Shown here piece after piece: positions 41,106 to 50,816 of a stretch of 64,000 bases of DNA; position 1 is the stretch's first letter; every line of letters starts with the position of its first letter. The position numbers and the translations under genes were made by a program. The notes under the pieces were generated by a model. That model was not told the origin of the DNA, made no database searches, and was given only the letters and a program-made list of their open reading frames with translations. The stretch is taken from positions 10,974,001 to 11,038,000 of the forward strand of contig OU015568.1 in assembly GCA_907165135.1 (NCBI GenBank). The letters are read 5' to 3'. Origin of the DNA: Oikopleura dioica (Eukaryota > Animalia > Chordata).

Positions 41106-42370
<1,265 letters not shown>

Positions 42371-43288
42371 ATCAAACTCGACTGATCCTGCCACAATCAA
42401 CACTCATGAACCCAGCTCTTCTCCATCATCCGAAACTCCTTCAGGCGACCGCTTTCGGTCGAAGTTATTTTCATTACACTTTCCGTTCTTTCTTTTCAGT
42501 GCTCAACATGTATGCAGAGAACTAGCTCAGCAATTTTCTTGATTTTATATTCTTAGCCTATCCGAAATTTTCTGTCAGTTCCACTTCAATTCTTTTATTC
42601 ATTGGAAAGTTAATAAAAAAGAAATTCAAGTTCAAGCCATCTTCATTAAAATGCAATTGCATCGATCTTCAAAAAGGAAAGTGACGGAATTTTCCATCTG
42701 ATCCGATTCCGCCGGATCATCAGCAGTAAACTCTGTAATAGCGATTATGGCGTAGAGCAAATTTGCATAGTCAAGCGAATATTCGCCGCTTTCCCTTTTC
42801 ATTCTTGAGTCATTTGTGAGGTTGCTTACCCCTTTCAACCATCGTCATAATAAAAATGTCAAGGAGTCCTTAGTATGGGGTACTGAACGCTCTGAGTCCA
42901 GTGAGGGGCAAATATCTTGCCACAAAAGCAACAAAAGAAAAACGATATTTGAAGGTTATTCATGAACAAAGCATACCGCTGTCTTGCAGACTTGGTGCCC
43001 TTGACTTCTGCTATTCTGCGAATCGTTGGATAGACTCCAAAATGGTTTTGTGACCGAGCATTTTTCGCGAGTTTTTCACGTTTCGAACACTAAATTTAGT
43101 AAATCTTCTTGTTTGCGAGAAAACACTAATGGAAAGAGAAATGACGCTAGAAATATTTCACTAAGGGCACTATTTGCGATTGTCGACTTATCCCCTCGTC
43201 GAAAGGGAAAAGTTTTCCCTTGCGCGCTCAGTTTTTGGTGGTCATTTATCAAAGAACAGAAAAACCGACGAGAGAACATCTATAAAAA

Positions 43289-46200
43289 ATGAGACTTCCG
43301 ACTGACCTGACAGTAGTAGATTCTATCAAAGCTGTGATAGAAGACAATTTGAAGGAAGATAAAGATGAATTCATCGAACGAACTGCTGTTACATTGAAAA
43401 AAGACTTTTTTCACGAGCTTTACAAAGAACTTTCGTATGATGTCCACGACTCTTCCGGTAAGAATTCTTCTTCACTACGTTTAGATAAAGTCTTCAGTAG
43501 TCTTTAGCAACAAAATTTACAGAAAGACACTATTTTTAAAGCAAGTAAACAGGAGGGGGTGTCTTTACTGTCTTTGTAACTGTGTATTCTTGAAATTGTA
43601 TCACTGTCTTTGTATCAGTGTAATTTCGACCCTTTTGTATCACTGTCTTATGGTATCATTGTAGTTGTATCTCTGTAGCCGATTTTTTTGGCTACAATTT
43701 TACAAAAGACAGTGATACAATCGCGAAAAATTTTGAATGGGGATTTTTTTTTCAAAATTTTTTTTTTGGTCATTTTTTTTTTATTTTTTCATTTTTTAAT
43801 AAAAAAAATACAAAAATACAATTTATTTTCTTATACAAATATTATATAATGCGCGCGGCAATCCCTATTTTACAATTTGAATGAACTTAATTTAAAAAAA
43901 AATATATTAAATTTCCTATTATTTTCTTATACAAAAATTATATAATGCGCGCGGCGCGCGCAATCCCTCTAATCTATTCCCCAAATCCTGTATAAAATGG
44001 AGGGACTATATTTTGGTAGCTAGGGGCGGGGCGGGGGAAGATTCCACAAGGGCTAATTAAAAACGCCCTATATAGCGATTTTACGCTTTTTTCTCGTACG
44101 GATGAATTATTCACTGTAATCTAAAAAATGGATGAAGCTTCGAACGTGAGTTTCCATCCAGTTTTTTTTGTGTTTTAACTCGCCCCAGTTTTGACGACTC
44201 TGGCGAGGCCTATCCCATTTTCTGGCATAAGCGGTGCCAATCCACATTTTTACAATTCAAATGAATTATGTTTCAAAAATACTTTTAATCATCTATTATT
44301 TTCTTATACAATAGTTATTTAATGCGCGCGGCGCGCGCAATCCCTAGAATTCATGTTGAAGCAAGGAAGCAAGCTTGTTTGCCAGATCAAACTGCTTTTC
44401 CCACGGTTGATTGAGATAACTTTCATCCACGAGCTGGATGAACGCTTCTGGTGCGCGATAAATGTAAATGTAGGAGAGCATAATCTTCGCAGCATGCTTC
44501 GACTCCCCATCGTTCGAGCCTAGTTCCGTCCACAGCGTTCTGATAATATCTCGGTGATGCGTTGACAGAATAAGTGATTCTGGAAGAGCGCGCAAATTTT
44601 AAAAAGTAAATGCCCAAATTGTTCAGCAACTTCTCCAAAAAGCTGGAACACGATTGTAGATGCTTCCGTATCGCCGCAGATATCTATCTTTTTCTTGAAG
44701 AAAATGTCCCAAATAAGCTCGTTTATTAGTGCTAACGTTGATGAGTGCCGATCCGAAATCGTGATTTCTGTTTTTAGCTGCTTTAGTGTTCGCAGGCAAA
44801 TGTTGAGCAGCACAACTGGCGGGAGACTTGACGAGGTGATTTTAATTTGATTGTTCATTACAGAAAACATTGTATGAATCTGTGATTCTGTTGTTTCTGC
44901 GCTGTCCAATGCTTTTTCGAAGATCTTCTGTATGAAAAGAAGAGGGATGAAAACTGAAAGCCTGTTTACCGCAACTAAGTACTTTAGCGCCGTTGCTATG
45001 CTTGTGGACTGGAGAAATGACCAAATCTCGACAAGGGAAAATGGCATGCTTACCAAGTCAGTGTCGAATAACTTCCATAGTCTATGGACCATATGAATTC
45101 ATCTCGATTCTTTACCTTTATGAACATCCGGTAAAACGGATTCCTCGACTCCAACATTCGTCATCGTTAGAGCAAGGCCTTTTTCTTTCTCCCGGTTTGC
45201 TGTAAGATAAAACGTTTCATTGCCCACTTTGACAGTAATTTCCGTCTGCTCGTTCTTATAGTCTTTCATCAAGGAAGCCAGGAAGTGGCTGGCAACGTAA
45301 TTATAAACTCGGTAAGCTTCACCGGCCAACTTCGGACTCAGAGCAACTTCGTTGAGGAGTGATTGGGGGATGGTCGCCTTTGTCTTCTTCTTTTCTAGGG
45401 TTTTTTGGGAGAAGAGCCAGTAAGTAACTCTTGAGCAGCGGCAGAATGAGGGCCGAAATTCTGCAGCATTGAAATTACAGGACGAAAGTCGAAGTTTGGA
45501 GAGTATGAGGTGGTTTCTCTTCGAGGGTAGGAAATGTAACCCTTTTGAGAGATCAAAACAGACATTATTTTATGATAAATAGAGGATGAGTCTTTGGAGG
45601 AGTCAGTTTTCTTTTAATCTTTCTGTCTCTTTCCTGTGCATAAATCCTCTCAGCACTGACCATCGTCTGAGCAGGCCCGATTCCCAACTTGGCCGAGCAA
45701 ACCCTCAACAGCTCGACTGTATTCAACGCAACTGGTCTTTGTTTCGCTTTCGCTTTCTTTTTTTCACTTTGGACAATCGCAGATTTGATATTCTTCACTT
45801 TGCTATGGAGCATATCCGCGATGCCTTGGTCAAAAATTCGCCCTCGTTGCCATTCCGCATATAAGTTTCCGAAATTTTCTGTCTGCACGGCTAAATTTAT
45901 TCTCCAGAATTTCTCCAGCTTGACTTCCGTGATTTGATTGTGTCGCTCGACGCAGAATCCAAGGGTTGAAGTTTGACAAGGCCCGTATGAAGAATTTCGT
46001 CTGAAATCGAGTGAATGCACAGCCGATACGAACGTCTAGTTCTTGTCGAGCATCGACAGAGAGGGACTCGAGTTTGTTGGAAGAGCCGAGATTGTTCATT
46101 GCTTTTTTGATGTCTTTGTCGGTACTGGCGGAGAAATGGGCTCTTTTGACGCTGTTTCCACGAATGTGAGGGATGCAGCACATCACTTCAAACAGATATT

Positions 46201-49200
46201 TTCTCCCTCTCTATCACAATCCAGCCACAAAACCAACTCATCGCAGCTGGAAGACTGCGTCTTCAGATGCTTTCTCATGTGCATTTTTGGATTTGCCTCG
46301 TCCTTATCTAAATTGTCAATGAGGCTCGCATCGTCTTCGTTGAGGTCCCACGCAATTTTCGGCGGGCATTGAAAATGTAAATCTTCGACTTTCCTAAGGT
46401 TAAAACATTCTTTGCAGTATCTTACAGCGCGTGGGTACTGATAAATCGTGTACGAGCTTTGGGTTTCTTCATTAAAATTGGAGAGATTAGAATGTTGAGT
46501 ACTAGAGCATTCTCGATTCTCACAATAGCGCGCTAAGTTTTAAATATGGCTAAAACAGCCATATTTTGGCTTCAGAGTGTGCGTAGAAGTTAACTAAATC
46601 ATAAAAACTTGTTAGGTCCTAACCTGTTAGGTTCCTAAGGAACACTTTTTGACCAATAAAAATCTAAATTTTCAGCAAAATTGGGTCTTTTTCGAAATTT
46701 TTCGTCAAAAAGTCCAATTTTCAAATGCGGGTGTTAGAGTCGAGATAGACCTCCAAAAAATTCGACATCTGGCTGAAGAGAATATCCCTCTTGACTCTCT
46801 AGATACCGCCTTCATAATTGACAACGAAGGTGCTTTGCAATGGGGAAACGCTCGGTTCGTGTACCAATTGGTATTCGAATACCAATTTTGGTATTCGAAT
46901 ACCAAATCTCCTCGAAAATTCAAAATTTGGTGCACCCAAAGAGTGCCTATGCGCTTTTGGTACACGAATCGAGCGTCCCCGTTGCAATGCAAAGTTTGCA
47001 TCTTATTGGAAATGTTGGAGATAGTCCAAATCACTGTCAGAATCTTGCTCGATGACCAAAAGATGAAAGAACAAAGGGTTAGAGAGCTTGTGTATCACTG
47101 TAATGAAGAAGATGCCCCTATTCATGCGAAAGAACTAGCTCATTTTAGATGAGCCAGGGGATCCGGAAGTCAAACATTCACTAAAGGAGACGCATGACAC
47201 GTCTGCGGCCAGACTACTGTAGTGAGCTTACTCTTGAGCGAGATGTTCTCAGTGCGTCCACGAATAAAGGAATGGATAGACAACGCAAATCCCGATAACC
47301 ACTTTCAAAAGTCATCCATGGATAGCAATAAAGGCGAAGCGTGAAACCCACCTAATTCAAGTTCGAAAAACTTTTGGAATCATACACTCGAGCATCGGTC
47401 CATTCCGCGTGAACGTCGATAAAAAGAAAACAAGCCAGACAGATGCTATACTCCGTGAAATTCGGGAAATTAGGCTTCTGCAAGAAGAAATTATCTTCTC
47501 GTTGATTCTCTTCCTCCTGTTTTGTAGAAAATCAAAACTTGTTCATTTTGGATAAAATTCATTTGAATTGTTAAAATAGGGACTGCGCGCGCCGCGCGCA
47601 TTAAATTGTAATAGTATAAGAAAATAAATTGTAATTTTTAGAAAATAAAGAAAAAATGTCTAAAATGAAGAAATTCAGAATAAATTTGGCCCTTTCAAGC
47701 CTATTCAAAATTTTTCGCTATTGTATTACTGTCATTATGGCAAATCAAATCCTCCAAAATGACCTATTCTGCCTGAAAATGGGAAAGGCCTCGTTAGAGT
47801 CGTCAAAATGGGGGCGGCTTATAAGAACAAAAAATTGGATGGAAACTCACGTTCAAAGTTCCATCCATTTTTGGAGGATACAATGAATAATTCATATGTA
47901 TGAGGAAAAAAGTCGAAAATCGCTATAAAGGGCATTATTAAAAAGCCCCTGTGGAATCTACCCCCGCCCCGCCCCTAGCTTCCAAAATATTGTCCCCCCT
48001 AATTAACAAATATTTGGCGGTTAGAAATTCATCCTTTTTTTAGGTTTCAGAGAAAAAATACACAAGTACAAGAAAAAAAACGCAAAATCGCTATATAGGG
48101 CGTTTTTAATTAGCCCTTGTGGAATCTTCCCCCGCCCCGCCCCTAGCTACCAAAATATAGTCCTTCCATTTTATATAGGATTAAGGGAATAGATAAGAGG
48201 GATTGCGCGCGCCGCGCGCATTATATAATTCTTGTATAAGAAAATATTAGATAATTTTATATATTTTTTTAATTTTGTTCAATAGAATTATTTAAAAAAA
48301 TAGGGATTGCGCGCGCCGCGCGCATTATATAATTTTTGTATAAGAAAATTAATTGTAATTTTGTATTTTTTTATTTAAAAAAAAATAAAAAAAATGACCA
48401 AAAAAAAAATAATATTGAAATTATTTTCCCATTTTAAATTTTTTGCCGTTGTATCACTGTCTTTGTACTTGTGTATTATGGTATCACTGTAGTTTGTAAA
48501 ATTGTACTATCGGCTACAGAGAAATTATGACAGTGATACCAAGCAATACAGAATTACAAAGACAGTGATACAATTTTAGGAATACATTGTTACCGTTACA
48601 ATAAAGAGACCCCGTCGTAAACAGCTCATTTAAAAAAATGTCTGTCAGAAGCGGTCGAAAGCAGATTTTCTTTCAATGACTACCAAGTAAATATGTAGTC
48701 ACGGACTTCATAACGGAAATTACTGCCCATAAATGATTCGCGAAGAAGATTCCTGAAGTTCAAGACTTGAACTGTTTACGTTGTGTAATCGTTCTTTTAC
48801 TAGAAAAATCGGAGAACGAAAAGAAAACCCAGCACGTGCTCATCGACTTCATTGAAACCTTCAAACCATTGATATTGGGGAAAGAAAGCTGGCTTTCAGA
48901 AGAACTTCTGGGTACCGAATTATGGTCTCATCTGACGACACCAGCTAAGGTAATCAAAAAGGGAAAAATTTAATGGATAATAATTAAATTTTATAGGGAA
49001 AGACAACGCGAGGAAGGATGCGCCAGTTTAAGACTTATAAAAAGGATACTATAGGAACTGGTTCGTGAAAGCTCACAAATTCGATTATTAAAATTTCACC
49101 TTGTTCTCATACTACCGGGTCATGATAATGAAACGCTATAAAAATTTATCCTTGAGAAAATTTTTGAGAAAAAAAAATCTATAACGAGATCAAAATTTAT

Positions 49201-50816
49201 TTTCATCCTTTGAAGGATAGCATCAATTTTATTATTTGCTTTACACACCTTCGGCAAGCTGATTTCTTAGGGTGTCCCTTGACTTGTTATCTGTTGAAAA
49301 GCTTTGACTCGCTAACCATTTGAAAGTCGAACTTATAAGCGTGATCAGAAACCTCCAACTTCATTTTGAAGAGCAGCCCCTTCGCATCCGCAAAATTCTT
49401 CTCAACTCAAAATGTCCAGATGATGATGTGACCCTCTCTTCCGCCGATTCACTTACGAAGTATTTCAACTTCTGGGAAAAGAAATTTCCTAGTTTCCTCG
49501 AAAATCTATACACTGTATTTTCGATGTTGAAGCTGTCGTCTCTCAAAACCTTTTACGGTAAAATGGATAACGATGAGGAATTGAACGACATCGATGCCAC
49601 TGTCAATAGCAAAAATTACAACGAAAAATTCCACAGTGATGATTCTGGAATCGAATCAAGGCAACGGGGCTGAAAACTTAAAAGATATTACAGGCGTTGA
49701 ACGTAAAAATTCATGACCAACTACCCTTTTCCTATGAGCTCAAGGTTATGAGCTCAAAAGTACATTTTTATTACAGGGAGGTAGGGTACATTTTTTATGG
49801 CACAACAGAAAGCTTTTTAGGAGCTTTTGAATGAGCCTAGTCTCGTCCCAGTAAGAAAAGAGGTAGGAGGAAATCATTTTTTCCCTCTTAGGAGTGAATA
49901 TGATATAGGAAAATTTCAGCCCTAGAAGTCAGTCTCTCGAAGACATTCATTCAATAGACTCGTTTCATTCATCATCCACAGACTCATTTCAACCTGCTCA
50001 ACTGGACTCACTAATCCATAAATTCGAGAAATCATTGAAAGCTCTTCATACCGAAGAGGAACACCCTAGCGATTTTCAAGAGCAGTTTGATATTTGGAAA
50101 GCAAAAATAAGGCAAAACTGCTTCAGTCCATCGAAAATGGAGGAGAGAAATCGACCAAGAAACATTATCCCTCAGGTGGCTATCCAAAGGTAAAAAACGT
50201 TGACTAGTTGTAGTTTTATTCGAATTTTTTGAAGATATGAGCAGACCAGGCAGGGTAATCGGCTCACTGACGAAGGGACTCTTTCTGAGAACAAAAGTCT
50301 TGCTGTGGGCCATGGCTGCTACTTGTCGTTTGAAAAGAACCGACTGATGATGCTAGCAGACTCGCATCCTCTCATTTATTTTGTCAGGCATGACAATCAA
50401 GTTATTGGCAACTCTTCGATAGATGTTGGCTTCAAGAACACTGTTGGTAAGTCTTCTTAAAATTTTTGATATCAACGAGGATAATCATATATTTTAGCCC
50501 TCTTCCCGGACGACAATCAACTTGAACTAATCTTCAAAAACGCCGCAAAACCAAATGAAGGACCCATCCAAATCTTTATCACGAAAAATCAGTAGCGAGC
50601 ATATGCCCCCCCTAAGTAAGCCCCAAAAGAAGTCAACTTATTTGTGATTTCTGGATATAATCATATACTTTAGCCTTCTTCCGGGACGACAATCAACTTG
50701 ACGATGTCTTCTCAATGAAACTAAATGAAGGGGCCATCGAAATCTTTATCACCAAAATCAGAAGAGAACATGTCTTGAACTTAGTAAACTCGCTGCCAAA
50801 CAATAACGTTTTTAAT
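43289..50816 (+). CDS. Uncharacterised gene or pseudogene whose first intron hosts the 5-kb element
   Basis: Exon ending TCC G|gtaag (~43458) joins in frame to gaag|TT CAA GAC TTG AAC (~48760); later exons at 49320-49558 and 50300-50800; in-frame stops near 49055 and 49307 suggest decay or mis-read boundaries. Confidence 0.35.
44344..45092 (-). pseudogene. Frameshifted fragment of an unidentified helical protein inside the element
   Basis: ORF 44520-45092 continues in another frame (44344-44595) and ends at the left TIR. Confidence 0.45.
45100..46480 (-). pseudogene. TOP3B: Decayed, C-terminally truncated DNA topoisomerase III-beta copy
   Basis: EANPKMHM...LWLDCDREGENIC, SVDARQELDVRIGCAFTRFQTK, SYGPCQTSTLGFCVERH, QRPVALNTVELLR, GYISYPRRET, GDHPPITP; frameshifts near 46190, 45990, 45400 and 45325. 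Confidence 0.9.
46700..47520 (+). pseudogene. Unidentified coding-like fragment inside the element
   Basis: ORF 46649-47152 followed by a stop-interrupted coding-like continuation up to the right TIR. Confidence 0.35.
46843..46981. mobile_element. 139-bp MITE with 8-bp TSD
   Basis: TTGCAATG at 46835-46842 and 46982-46989; TIRs ...ACGCTCGGTTCGTGTACCAA / TTGGTACACGAATCGAGCGT... Confidence 0.8.

Follow-up and report, generated by a model that had tools for sequence, protein, structure and literature searches.

Does a 5-kb segment of the Oikopleura dioica genome (64.3 Mb), bounded by long inverted arms and filled with pieces of host genes, represent a transposon that has captured those pieces, or a local rearrangement of chromosomal DNA? 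An initial annotation of the 64,000-nucleotide stretch analysed here (the window) had proposed a Pack-type DNA transposon. We find that the segment (element A, window 43553-48616, 5,064 bp) is a real, recently inserted cut-and-paste transposon. It is very probably a non-autonomous Pack-TIR belonging to a small, unnamed O. dioica family, mobilised in trans, most likely by a hAT-type enzyme, with a cargo acquired by template switching. The family appears to be undescribed.

Boundaries and empty site of element A

Element A begins GAGGGGGTGTC and finishes GAGACCCCGTC, and is flanked on either side by a perfect 8-bp target site duplication (TSD), GTAAACAG, which the initial annotation had also seen. 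The inverted arms, which had been placed at 43553-~44345 and ~47580-48616, are real, with limits that we refined (window coordinates):

43545-43552, no strand: left TSD copy, 8 bp, GTAAACAG; one copy only in empty-site contigs
43553-44351, plus strand: left arm, 799 bp, terminus GAGGGGGTGTCTTTACTGTC
47556-48616, minus strand: right arm, 1,061 bp, terminus ...GAGACCCCGTC
48617-48624, no strand: right TSD copy, GTAAACAG; one copy only in empty-site contigs

One inverted pair spans 197 nt at 94% identity and is accompanied by many further pairs; when the arms are aligned globally, 89% of the aligned pairs are identical, and indels are numerous. Although some units are duplicated, these long, modular arms are not plain tandem arrays. 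The subterminal motif TGTATCACTGT (at most one mismatch) occurs 11 times in the window, compared with 0.51 expected, and none of 100 shuffles reached 11; nine of the 11 matches are grouped at 43597-43719 and 48450-48572, in both orientations. The core of the CGCG module, ATGCGCGCGGC, is found three times per side (left, 43849, 43945 and 44322; right, 47591, 48211 and 48315), and the GC-box block, GGGGCGGGGCGGGG, once on the left (44023-44036) and twice on the right (47962 and 48130). Both modules are absent from the rest of the window, and the numbers of all three kinds of unit match those initially annotated (multiple, three per side, and one plus two, respectively). The right-arm unit around the GC box is duplicated, with copies 168 bp apart (compared over 110 bp), and CTATATAG lies ~35 nt inward of the left-arm GC-box block. 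The GC-box and TATA-like modules, which face inward in both arms, are putative promoters that could drive transcription of the cargo.

An allele with a single GTAAACAG, suggested at the outset as a check, was found in three further public runs (three studies), whose contigs join the flanks of A precisely. In two runs the joint is 43544->48617, with 8 nt fitting both sides; in the third it is 43552->48633, with CTCATTT between. The empty site is clean in all three of these genomes, none of which has a cargo-less element there, and the flanks in these contigs differ from the reference by ~5-6%. The precise empty site with a single GTAAACAG indicates that the insertion of A is polymorphic and arose by transposition rather than by local inversion.

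Captured gene fragments and related elements

In the ~3.2-kb core of A, copies of host genes form a mosaic. Their three parents lie on two chromosomes, and identity to them is 89-98%. The parts of the core are as follows (window coordinates):

44352-44637, minus strand: UNC-79 fragment a (parent C2:9456614-9456927, 89%)
44642-45080, minus strand: UNC-79 fragment b (parent C2:9457606-9458044, 96%)
45081-45096, no strand: filler, 16 nt, at the UNC-79/TOP3B junction; first 8 nt palindromic with the preceding TCCATAG
45097-46305, minus strand: TOP3B fragment (parent C1:9707931-9709173, 95.7% over aligned bases)
46306-46316, no strand: filler, 11 nt, at the TOP3B/UNC-79 junction
46317-46541, minus strand: UNC-79 fragment c (parent C2:9458554-9458778, 98%)
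46552-46761, no strand: copy of a dispersed ~200-bp repeat (>40 genome copies, 72-88%; very high depth)
46769-47494, plus strand: third-locus fragment (parent C2:6891268-6891842, 89-94%)

A mosaic of TOP3B and two other fragments had been recognised initially and stands; the opposite orientations also ascribed to it apply to the third fragment only, TOP3B and UNC-79 both being on the minus strand.

The three UNC-79 pieces are collinear with their parent, which has a 648-aa exon ORF. Fragment a is without 42 parental coding bases at the a/b junction; we rejected an intron as the explanation of this gap, which is a coding deletion. A 678-bp 'skip' between a and b does not represent sequence omitted at capture, as the reference parent contains an inserted 624-bp MITE. 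Between b and c, the TOP3B piece stands in place of 509 parental bases (508 letters in the parent contigs). The captured TOP3B piece (1.2 kb) extends from the end of Toprim to about position 305 of Topoisom_bac, and carries four frameshifting indels (deletions of 1 and 38 nt; insertions of 4 and 1 nt). It keeps one intron of ~86 nt, across which the Pfam coordinates run on without a break (position 156 to 155), indicating capture at the DNA level; retroposition of the cargo was rejected on the same ground. The parent TOP3B is fuller than the cargo copy, with Toprim and Topoisom_bac ORFs past the captured part, and its best human match is TOP3B (2e-92, versus 5e-49 for TOP3A). The parent of the third fragment lies inside a 320-aa ORF without a Pfam match, and the fragment itself is broken by a small foldback repeat (46838-47002) missing from the parent, one of two small repeats nested in the core. 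The cargo of A thus consists of decayed, DNA-level gene copies joined by short filler. The suggestion that such elements shuffle exons is borne out in DNA only: on the A locus, one oligo-dT RNA run, possibly from a diverged lineage, gave poly-T matches and no transcripts.

In the genome, the arm sequences occur only at five element loci, and the parent genes are not flanked by them. A is therefore not unique, and the family comprises five copies: A and four relatives at four other loci, which share its termini or modules and three of which have their own perfect 8-bp TSD:

B, C1:9550464-9554842, 4.4 kb: perfect 8-bp TSD ATGAAAAA
C, C4:12988844-13015069, 26.2 kb: perfect 8-bp TSD TTAAAAAC
D, C2:997254-1005922, 8.7 kb: GACGGGGTC terminus and GC-box module in common; no recognisable TSD
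E, C1:5380206-5380583, 378 bp: perfect 8-bp TSD TTTGATTG; miniature form, no cargo

Comparison of the cargo between copies, also proposed initially, revealed wholly different contents, which in A, B and D match parents extending past the captured piece. B carries a BLTP1 piece (parent in a 1,526-aa ORF) and a KAP-NTPase/ankyrin piece (688-aa ORF), with a 307-bp detour that returns at CCAGT microhomology, and in D a dynein piece (stalk/AAA_9) matches C1:10663960-10665658 at 89% identity. The cargoes of A and B are each single-copy. In C, element ends and one perfect 8-bp duplication surround 24.5 kb of single-copy DNA. Its ORFs look intact and include a primase-small-subunit paralogue and a RING-finger gene; this stretch may be host sequence that moved in one piece. 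Perfect TSDs and intact ends are present in A, B and C alike.

Mobilisation and the origin of the cargo

We found no recognisable transposase in A, B, C or D. The only Pfam match among the ORFs of A was Topoisom_bac, in line with the transposase-free element proposed initially. The 98 ORFs of at least 75 aa in C gave DNA_primase_S, RING and weak noise with no transposase domain, and tblastn of 477 ORFs from five resident hAT loci against A, B, C and D gave no match, though short exons could escape both searches. Two exact-pattern scans of the genome, one with the subterminal motif pair and one with a 13-mer from the TIR core, picked up A, B, C and E and, beyond these, only three isolated single matches, close to the 0-2 of a control pattern; the anticipated autonomous MULE, hAT or P partner with the same ends was not found in the assembly by these scans. 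A motif-pair scan of public metagenome contigs yielded 120 loci, none homologous to the arms beyond the motif. The genome does contain a source of hAT transposase, a resident family of seven copies whose matches to the hAT domain model PF05699 are identical or nearly so (98% identity between the two full elements compared). This 6-kb hAT was rejected as a partner, since its ends differ (CAGGGTGTCAAATCG...) and neither they nor its interior have anything in common with the arms.

Each of the four copies with a TSD (A, B, C and E) has one of exactly 8 bp. Three (GTAAACAG, ATGAAAAA and TTAAAAAC) fit nTnnnnAn in full, and TTTGATTG fits at position 2 only; position 2 is T in four of four and position 7 is A in three of four, and the chance of at least three of four fitting both is ~0.0025. 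The TIRs of hAT elements are usually short and start YARNG, whereas the arms of A are far longer than is typical of hAT, and the family termini (GAGGG, GACGG and GAGTA) have G as the first base and do not fit YARNG. Hermes, a hAT element, is documented both to target nTnnnnAn and to require subterminal repeats (PMC10368747). The length of the TSD and its fit to nTnnnnAn favour a hAT-type transposase acting in trans, which on these sequence features is our best guess, hAT being likelier than MULE. Such an enzyme would bind the termini and the TGTATCACTGT arrays, which lie in the outermost ~170 bp on either side. The cargo would be gained by template switching while the element was being repaired (filling of the gap left by excision) or replicated (at a stalled fork), with the polymerase hopping between unlinked host loci and then back. 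Template switching would account for the collinear UNC-79 pieces with the TOP3B detour in A and for the 307-bp detour in B.

It is possible, though doubtful, that the family is as described but belongs to another superfamily with 8-bp TSDs (P, MULE/Foldback, Merlin or Zisupton) and is moved by that family's transposase. Long modular arms with internal tandem units are nearer to Foldback/MULE ends than to those of a typical hAT, the GAG or GAC termini resemble those with which many MULE TIRs start, and the assembly scans gave no hAT partner with matching ends. However, MULE and Foldback elements usually make duplications of 9-11 bp (9 bp for Foldback), while all four intact copies have exactly 8 bp and the hAT pattern. 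The P-element N-terminal domain PF12017 had no match in the genome, in a search that lacked a positive control. MULEs are, moreover, rare in animals, where Tan et al. found no Pack-MULE (PMC8277862).

The route of capture can also be read differently: a cargo-less, E-like element may have inserted first and later been broken and repaired in situ with host sequence, so that the loaded element never moved. We consider such transposition-independent gap filling unlikely, even though it has been put forward as the chief route to single-copy Pack-TIRs in animals (PMC8277862) and each cargo in the family is single-copy. The cargoes differ from their parents (by 2-11%) about as much as alleles differ in the flanks, so that landing of a loaded element and later capture in situ both fit. 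However, the other three genomes have the clean empty site and in no case a cargo-less element, A, B and C retain perfect TSDs with intact ends, and the perfect TSD around the 24.5 kb of C is more easily explained by movement of a loaded unit. That A was never mobile, and is a local inversion, a segmental rearrangement or an assembly chimera bounded by inverted repeats, is hardly credible. Every cargo-bearing copy is unique, and the reference assembly was made from Nanopore reads with haplotypes merged (PMC8008620), but two runs of the source study contain 54-65% of the words of the window. The inversion that the initial annotation had set against its own reading, with arms confined to this locus and no empty allele, is contradicted by the four relatives at unlinked loci, three with their own duplications, and by the precise empty site in three runs. 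We thus retain a non-autonomous Pack-TIR, loaded by template switching and moved in trans, as the preferred reading.

Significance and comparison with known systems

Gene capture by cut-and-paste transposons has a solid record in plants; the known animal cases are mostly small, single-copy and possibly transposition-independent events. Element A is a clean animal example, with kilobase-scale cargo from several identifiable parents, template-switch junctions and presence/absence polymorphism among living populations, and its sister elements span a 378-bp miniature to a 26-kb giant. The host is a laboratory-tractable chordate with a 64-Mb genome, which makes the mechanism of capture and the effects of cargo on parent genes experimentally approachable. 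The family is also a described addition to the repeats of Okinawan O. dioica, 44% of which are unclassified (PMC8008620). More speculatively, and in our view improbably, the family may be active, pick up host DNA unusually often and move tens of kilobases, the 24.5 kb of C having been relocated in this way. Gene relocation and extreme genome scrambling are reported among O. dioica lineages (PMC11067885); such elements would, if this were true, be one concrete vehicle for both, and would also give rise to chimeric genes in a genome that is the most compact of any chordate.

Like non-autonomous hAT elements (maize Ds; Hermes, hobo and Tol2 derivatives), the family combines 8-bp nTnnnnAn TSDs with subterminal repeat arrays within about 200 bp of the ends, and a miniature (E) with larger, internally substituted members. 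It differs from them in its GAGGG/GACGG rather than YARNG termini, its inverted arms of 0.8-1 kb, and in that no matching transposase-bearing copy was found in the assembly. In the 'transposing elements' mediated by Drosophila Foldback and in the Ac/Ds macrotransposons of maize, two element ends enclose other DNA; C resembles them in its ends enclosing 24.5 kb of single-copy DNA within one perfect 8-bp duplication.

Plant Pack-MULEs and Pack-TYPE elements (rice, maize and Arabidopsis; PMC8903248, PMC5861414) share with A long TIRs, mosaic cargo drawn from several unlinked genes with introns kept, and a chimera in one transcriptional orientation (UNC-79 and TOP3B on the same strand). A differs in its TSD (8 bp, not 9-11 bp) and in the size of its family, five copies as opposed to roughly 3,000 in rice. 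Turmoil-1 of C. elegans (PMC2572040) is, like A, an animal DNA transposon with protein-coding host sequence (transduplication); there, however, the captured sequence lies in the ITRs of an autonomous-type element, and in A it lies in the interior of a non-autonomous one.

The nearest systems are the animal Pack-TIRs (Tan et al. 2021, Nat Commun 12:4280, PMC8277862), such as Pack-hAT-N8_XT of Xenopus tropicalis and Ssk-FB4 of Drosophila. The initial view that capture by TIR elements is little reported in animals needs qualifying, since a catalogue covering 100 animal genomes lists 370 Pack-TIRs, 208 of them hAT (PMC8277862); neither that paper nor its accessible supplements name tunicates. Common to these elements and A are a TIR backbone, a TSD, a host-gene interior with its parent elsewhere, microhomology or filler, and the lack of a transposase, and Ssk-FB4 also has long, repetitive, foldback-type TIRs (PMC8277862). 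Pack-TIRs are, thus, already known in animals, and A stands out by the size and mixed parentage of its cargo, which amounts to 3.2 kb (three parents, two chromosomes) compared with a catalogue median of 224 bp. The family also differs from the catalogue (PMC8277862) in that its five copies include at least three (A, B and D) whose captured host-gene fragments differ from one another and a fourth (C) that holds 24.5 kb of single-copy DNA with no parent identified, and in that the insertion of A is polymorphic, with a clean empty site.

The inserted element and its empty site

Element A occupies 5,064 bp between two copies of an 8-bp target-site duplication (TSD), GTAAACAG, at positions 43545-43552 and 48617-48624 of the window, and runs from GAGGGGGTGTCTTTACTGTC to ...AAAGAGACCCCGTC. 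A repeat search of the window linked its two ends by 41 inverted pairs (the best of 197 nt at 94%), and in a global alignment the two arms were 89% identical over aligned pairs, with many indels.

Inverted arms of A (window coordinates)
43553-44351, left arm
47556-48616, right arm

The TSD, matching termini and inverted arms described in the initial annotation were thus recovered, and its account of the arm modules was exact: there are three CGCG modules in each arm, and the GC-box block GGGGCGGGGCGGGG occurs once in the left arm and twice in the right. Neither module was found outside A's arms in the 64-kb window. The window contains 11 matches to the subterminal motif TGTATCACTGT when one mismatch is allowed (0.51 expected from shuffling); nine of them, representing both orientations, lie within ~170 bp of A's two termini. 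Each GGGGCGGGGCGGGG block (44020-44080, 47920-47975 and 48090-48145) has CTATATAG or a near copy on its inward side, at a distance of ~35 nt. This arrangement of GC box and TATA-like CTATATAG, which aims into the cargo from both arms of A, looks promoter-like; it is also present twice per arm in the related element B. Upstream of A lies a cathepsin-like gene (41264-41830), and downstream an ORF (49308-49670) with a borderline Ribonuc_2-5A match.

We compared window 43200-49000 with contigs of three other public DNA sequencing runs from three different studies. In runs X5 and X3 the contig passes directly from 43544 to 48617, skipping 5,072 bases, with eight letters that fit either side, and the joint reads flank, a single GTAAACAG, flank. 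Run X7 has the same joint, plus a small indel in a run of A residues just past it. An empty-site allele with one target copy, which the initial annotation had proposed looking for, is therefore present in all three runs, and excludes a local inversion at this locus. A is a transposon insertion and is polymorphic. Since hAT-type excision usually leaves footprints, the clean single target is most likely the ancestral allele, never occupied. The empty-site contigs diverge from the reference flanks by ~5-6% (13-16 differences in 230-268 nt), so that 'recent', applied to the insertion of A, can refer to no more than the time since these haplotypes split. Depth over the outer arms of A is 3-5x single-copy in X3 in spite of the empty site, and arms with at least 90% similarity to those of A must therefore be present elsewhere in that genome.

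Relatives of A in the same genome

The assembly used for whole-genome comparisons comprises 64,281,565 bp in 19 contigs. A genome-wide search with A's arms, suggested earlier as a check, revealed related copies at four other loci; these elements, B to E, were recovered by either arm of A, and their ends were read from the sequence.

Relatives of A (C1, C2 and C4 are contigs of the assembly)
B, C1:9550464-9554842, 4,379 bp, TSD ATGAAAAA
C, C4:12988844-13015069, 26,226 bp, TSD TTAAAAAC
D, C2:997254-1005922, 8.7 kb, no recognisable TSD
E, C1:5380206-5380583, 378 bp, TSD TTTGATTG

B and C have arms that are 94% identical to each other; A's arms are 75-78% identical to theirs. D is diverged (inverted arms of 762 bp, 80%), and shares with A the GC-box module and the terminus GACGGGGTC found at the right end of A. 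E is a cargo-less miniature consisting of nothing but termini, the motif array and one CGCG module. Two genome-wide scans for exact patterns located the subterminal array at the family loci only.

The interior of C is 24.5 kb, of which the 16 kb searched was single-copy in the genome. Besides CGCG modules at scattered positions and, internally, an 87-bp remnant of a subterminal region, it contains several low-complexity ORFs, a RING finger and an intact-looking primase small-subunit paralogue. The perfect TSD (8/8 match, expected by chance at ~2e-5, as we estimate from base composition) argues that all 26 kb were inserted as one unit, and C is possibly a macrotransposon.

The archaeo-eukaryotic primase small-subunit domain (PF01896) is found at approximately seven dispersed loci of the genome, one of them within C. 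The number is high for an animal with a compact genome, in which one PRIM1 gene is expected, and the loci may represent a gene family or genes of mobile elements.

Loci with PF01896
C5:14258500-14259359
C5:11241011-11241731
C1:12361908-12362622
C4:1647581-1648325
C5:7008721-7009435
C1:514811-515514
C4:12997839-12998594

Host-gene cargo and its acquisition

Nothing in B, C or D corresponds to the 3.2-kb core of A, whose individual pieces match other loci within this genome.

Pieces of A's core (window coordinates, strand, parent locus and identity)
44352-44637, minus, UNC-79 piece a, C2:9456614-9456927, 89%
44642-45080, minus, UNC-79 piece b, C2:9457606-9458044, 96%
45097-46305, minus, TOP3B piece, C1:9707931-9709173 (reverse complement of parent)
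46317-46541, minus, UNC-79 piece c, C2:9458554-9458778, 98%
46552-46761, dispersed ~200-bp repeat, 72-88%, more than 40 genomic copies
46769-46837 and 47003-47494, plus, third-locus piece, C2:6891268-6891842, 94% and 89%

The initial annotation had placed the core fragments in opposite orientations; this holds for the third-locus piece, on the plus strand, and not for the UNC-79 and TOP3B pieces, which share the minus strand. The third-locus piece is split by a small foldback repeat (46838-47002) absent from the parent. This foldback is 165 bp long, with ends CAATGGGGAAACG...; it and the repeat at 46552-46761 have a summed contig depth of 10-200x single copy in the other runs.

The parent at 9.457 Mb of C2 is UNC-79 (648-aa exon ORF, PF14776 match at 1.3e-39), and that at 9.708 Mb of C1 is TOP3B (ORFs with Toprim and Topoisom_bac positions 3-410; best solved relative human TOP3B at 2e-92, versus 5e-49 for TOP3A). 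Both parents reach well past the captured parts, which indicates that copying ran from gene to element. The TOP3B piece keeps an intron of ~86 nt, over which the Pfam model coordinates are contiguous in parent and cargo alike, so that DNA, rather than mRNA, was the template. The piece, whose aligned bases are 95.7% identical to the parent, has four frameshifting indels and is thus a decayed fragment.

In the reference assembly, a coding exon of the parent UNC-79 gene contains a 624-bp MITE (L040:3983-4606; G000:C2:9456982-9457605) with TIR CAGAGTTCAAAAA... and an 8-bp TSD, GCTGGAAC. Once the MITE and one copy of its TSD are taken out, UNC-79 reads through as an uninterrupted ORF of 820 aa. The MITE is absent from contigs of three other runs, which have 42-44 letters at that point. 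It represents either a disrupted allele or an insertion that is removed as an intron.

B carries 2.1 kb of BLTP1 in two parts (88% and 93%) from a 1,526-aa exon ORF, 307 bp (98%) of a KAP-NTPase/ankyrin gene at one point within the BLTP1 fragment, and a 53-bp piece of a third source locus. In D the cargo is a dynein heavy-chain fragment of ~1.7 kb that includes the stalk and AAA_9 (89% identity), broken by a later-inserted 760-bp foldback repeat (L059:101-860; G000:C2:1002101-1002860). The latter has ~200-bp inverted ends and at least 40 copies genome-wide, in identity classes of 90-94% and 78-80%. The comparison of internal cargo between copies, also proposed earlier, thus showed that it differs: of the four members that bear cargo, three (A, B and D) hold different host-gene fragments.

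At the junction from UNC-79 to TOP3B in A there are 16 filler bases, the first eight of which form, with the preceding seven, a perfect 15-nt palindrome, TCCATAG T CTATGGA (45074-45088), a signature of snap-back or hairpin-type repair. CGATTCTT adjoins the breakpoint in both templates. Where the copy returns to UNC-79 there are 11 filler bases, and what the TOP3B piece replaces is exactly the 509 bases that separate pieces b and c in the parent; TOP3B in A looks like a detour followed by return to the same UNC-79 template. The 307-bp detour in B departs from BLTP1 at ...ATCCA; its last bases are CCAGT, and BLTP1 sequence picks up again at its own CCAGT, with two T added. These junction marks suggest that the cargo was acquired by error-prone template switching, which may have taken place during gap repair after excision or through fork stalling and template switching. 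Both models have been proposed for animal Pack-TIRs (non-autonomous TIR transposons carrying host gene fragments; PMC8277862), and the junctions of A and B match the pattern expected from either. That identity varies among the pieces (89-98%) suggests that capture took place in more than one episode; differing selective constraint could partly explain it.

Mobilising enzyme and comparison with known elements

No member of the family encodes a recognisable transposase, and mobilisation must therefore occur in trans. Each of the four intact TSDs is 8 bp long with T at position 2, and three of the four have A at position 7. Such a fit to nTnnnnAn, the target preference of the hAT transposon Hermes (PMC10368747), has a chance probability of ~0.0025. 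The subterminal arrays of short motifs in both orientations are a further likeness, as hAT transposases need such arrays within ~200 bp of the ends (PMC10368747). However, the family termini begin with G, rather than C or T. An autonomous partner with the same ends, postulated in the initial annotation, was searched for and not found. The genome does have a resident hAT family of seven copies, whose matches to PF05699 (hAT dimerisation) are identical or near-identical and all lie in open frames of 177 aa; a check of one copy confirmed the domain. In a comparison of three full elements, one pair shares 98% identity and the third element stands at 86-91%. The resident hAT ends (CAGGGTGTCAAATCG..., TSD GTGTTAGC) are unrelated to the family's arms. 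One resident element of ~6 kb, at L055:1492-7566 (G000:C5:13843991-13850065), has 84-bp TIRs, CAGGGTGTCAAATCGCGGGG..., TSD GTGTTAGC and a hAT dimerisation domain. The P-element N-terminal domain had no match in the genome, a weak negative. On balance, we lean slightly towards a mobilising enzyme of the hAT superfamily.

A has every defining feature of a Pack-TIR. The catalogue of animal Pack-TIRs lists 370 in 100 genomes, 208 of them hAT, with a median cargo of 224 bp, and only four are multicopy, in addition to the Drosophila Ssk-FB4 family (PMC8277862); tunicates are not named in that paper or in its accessible supplements. In the Okinawa O. dioica assembly 44% of repeats are unclassified (PMC8008620), and we found no description of A's family in the literature on Oikopleura repeats. 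The family is distinguished by kilobase-scale cargo from multiple parents, cargo in most of its members, presence/absence polymorphism and a 26-kb member, features that require no new kind of system.
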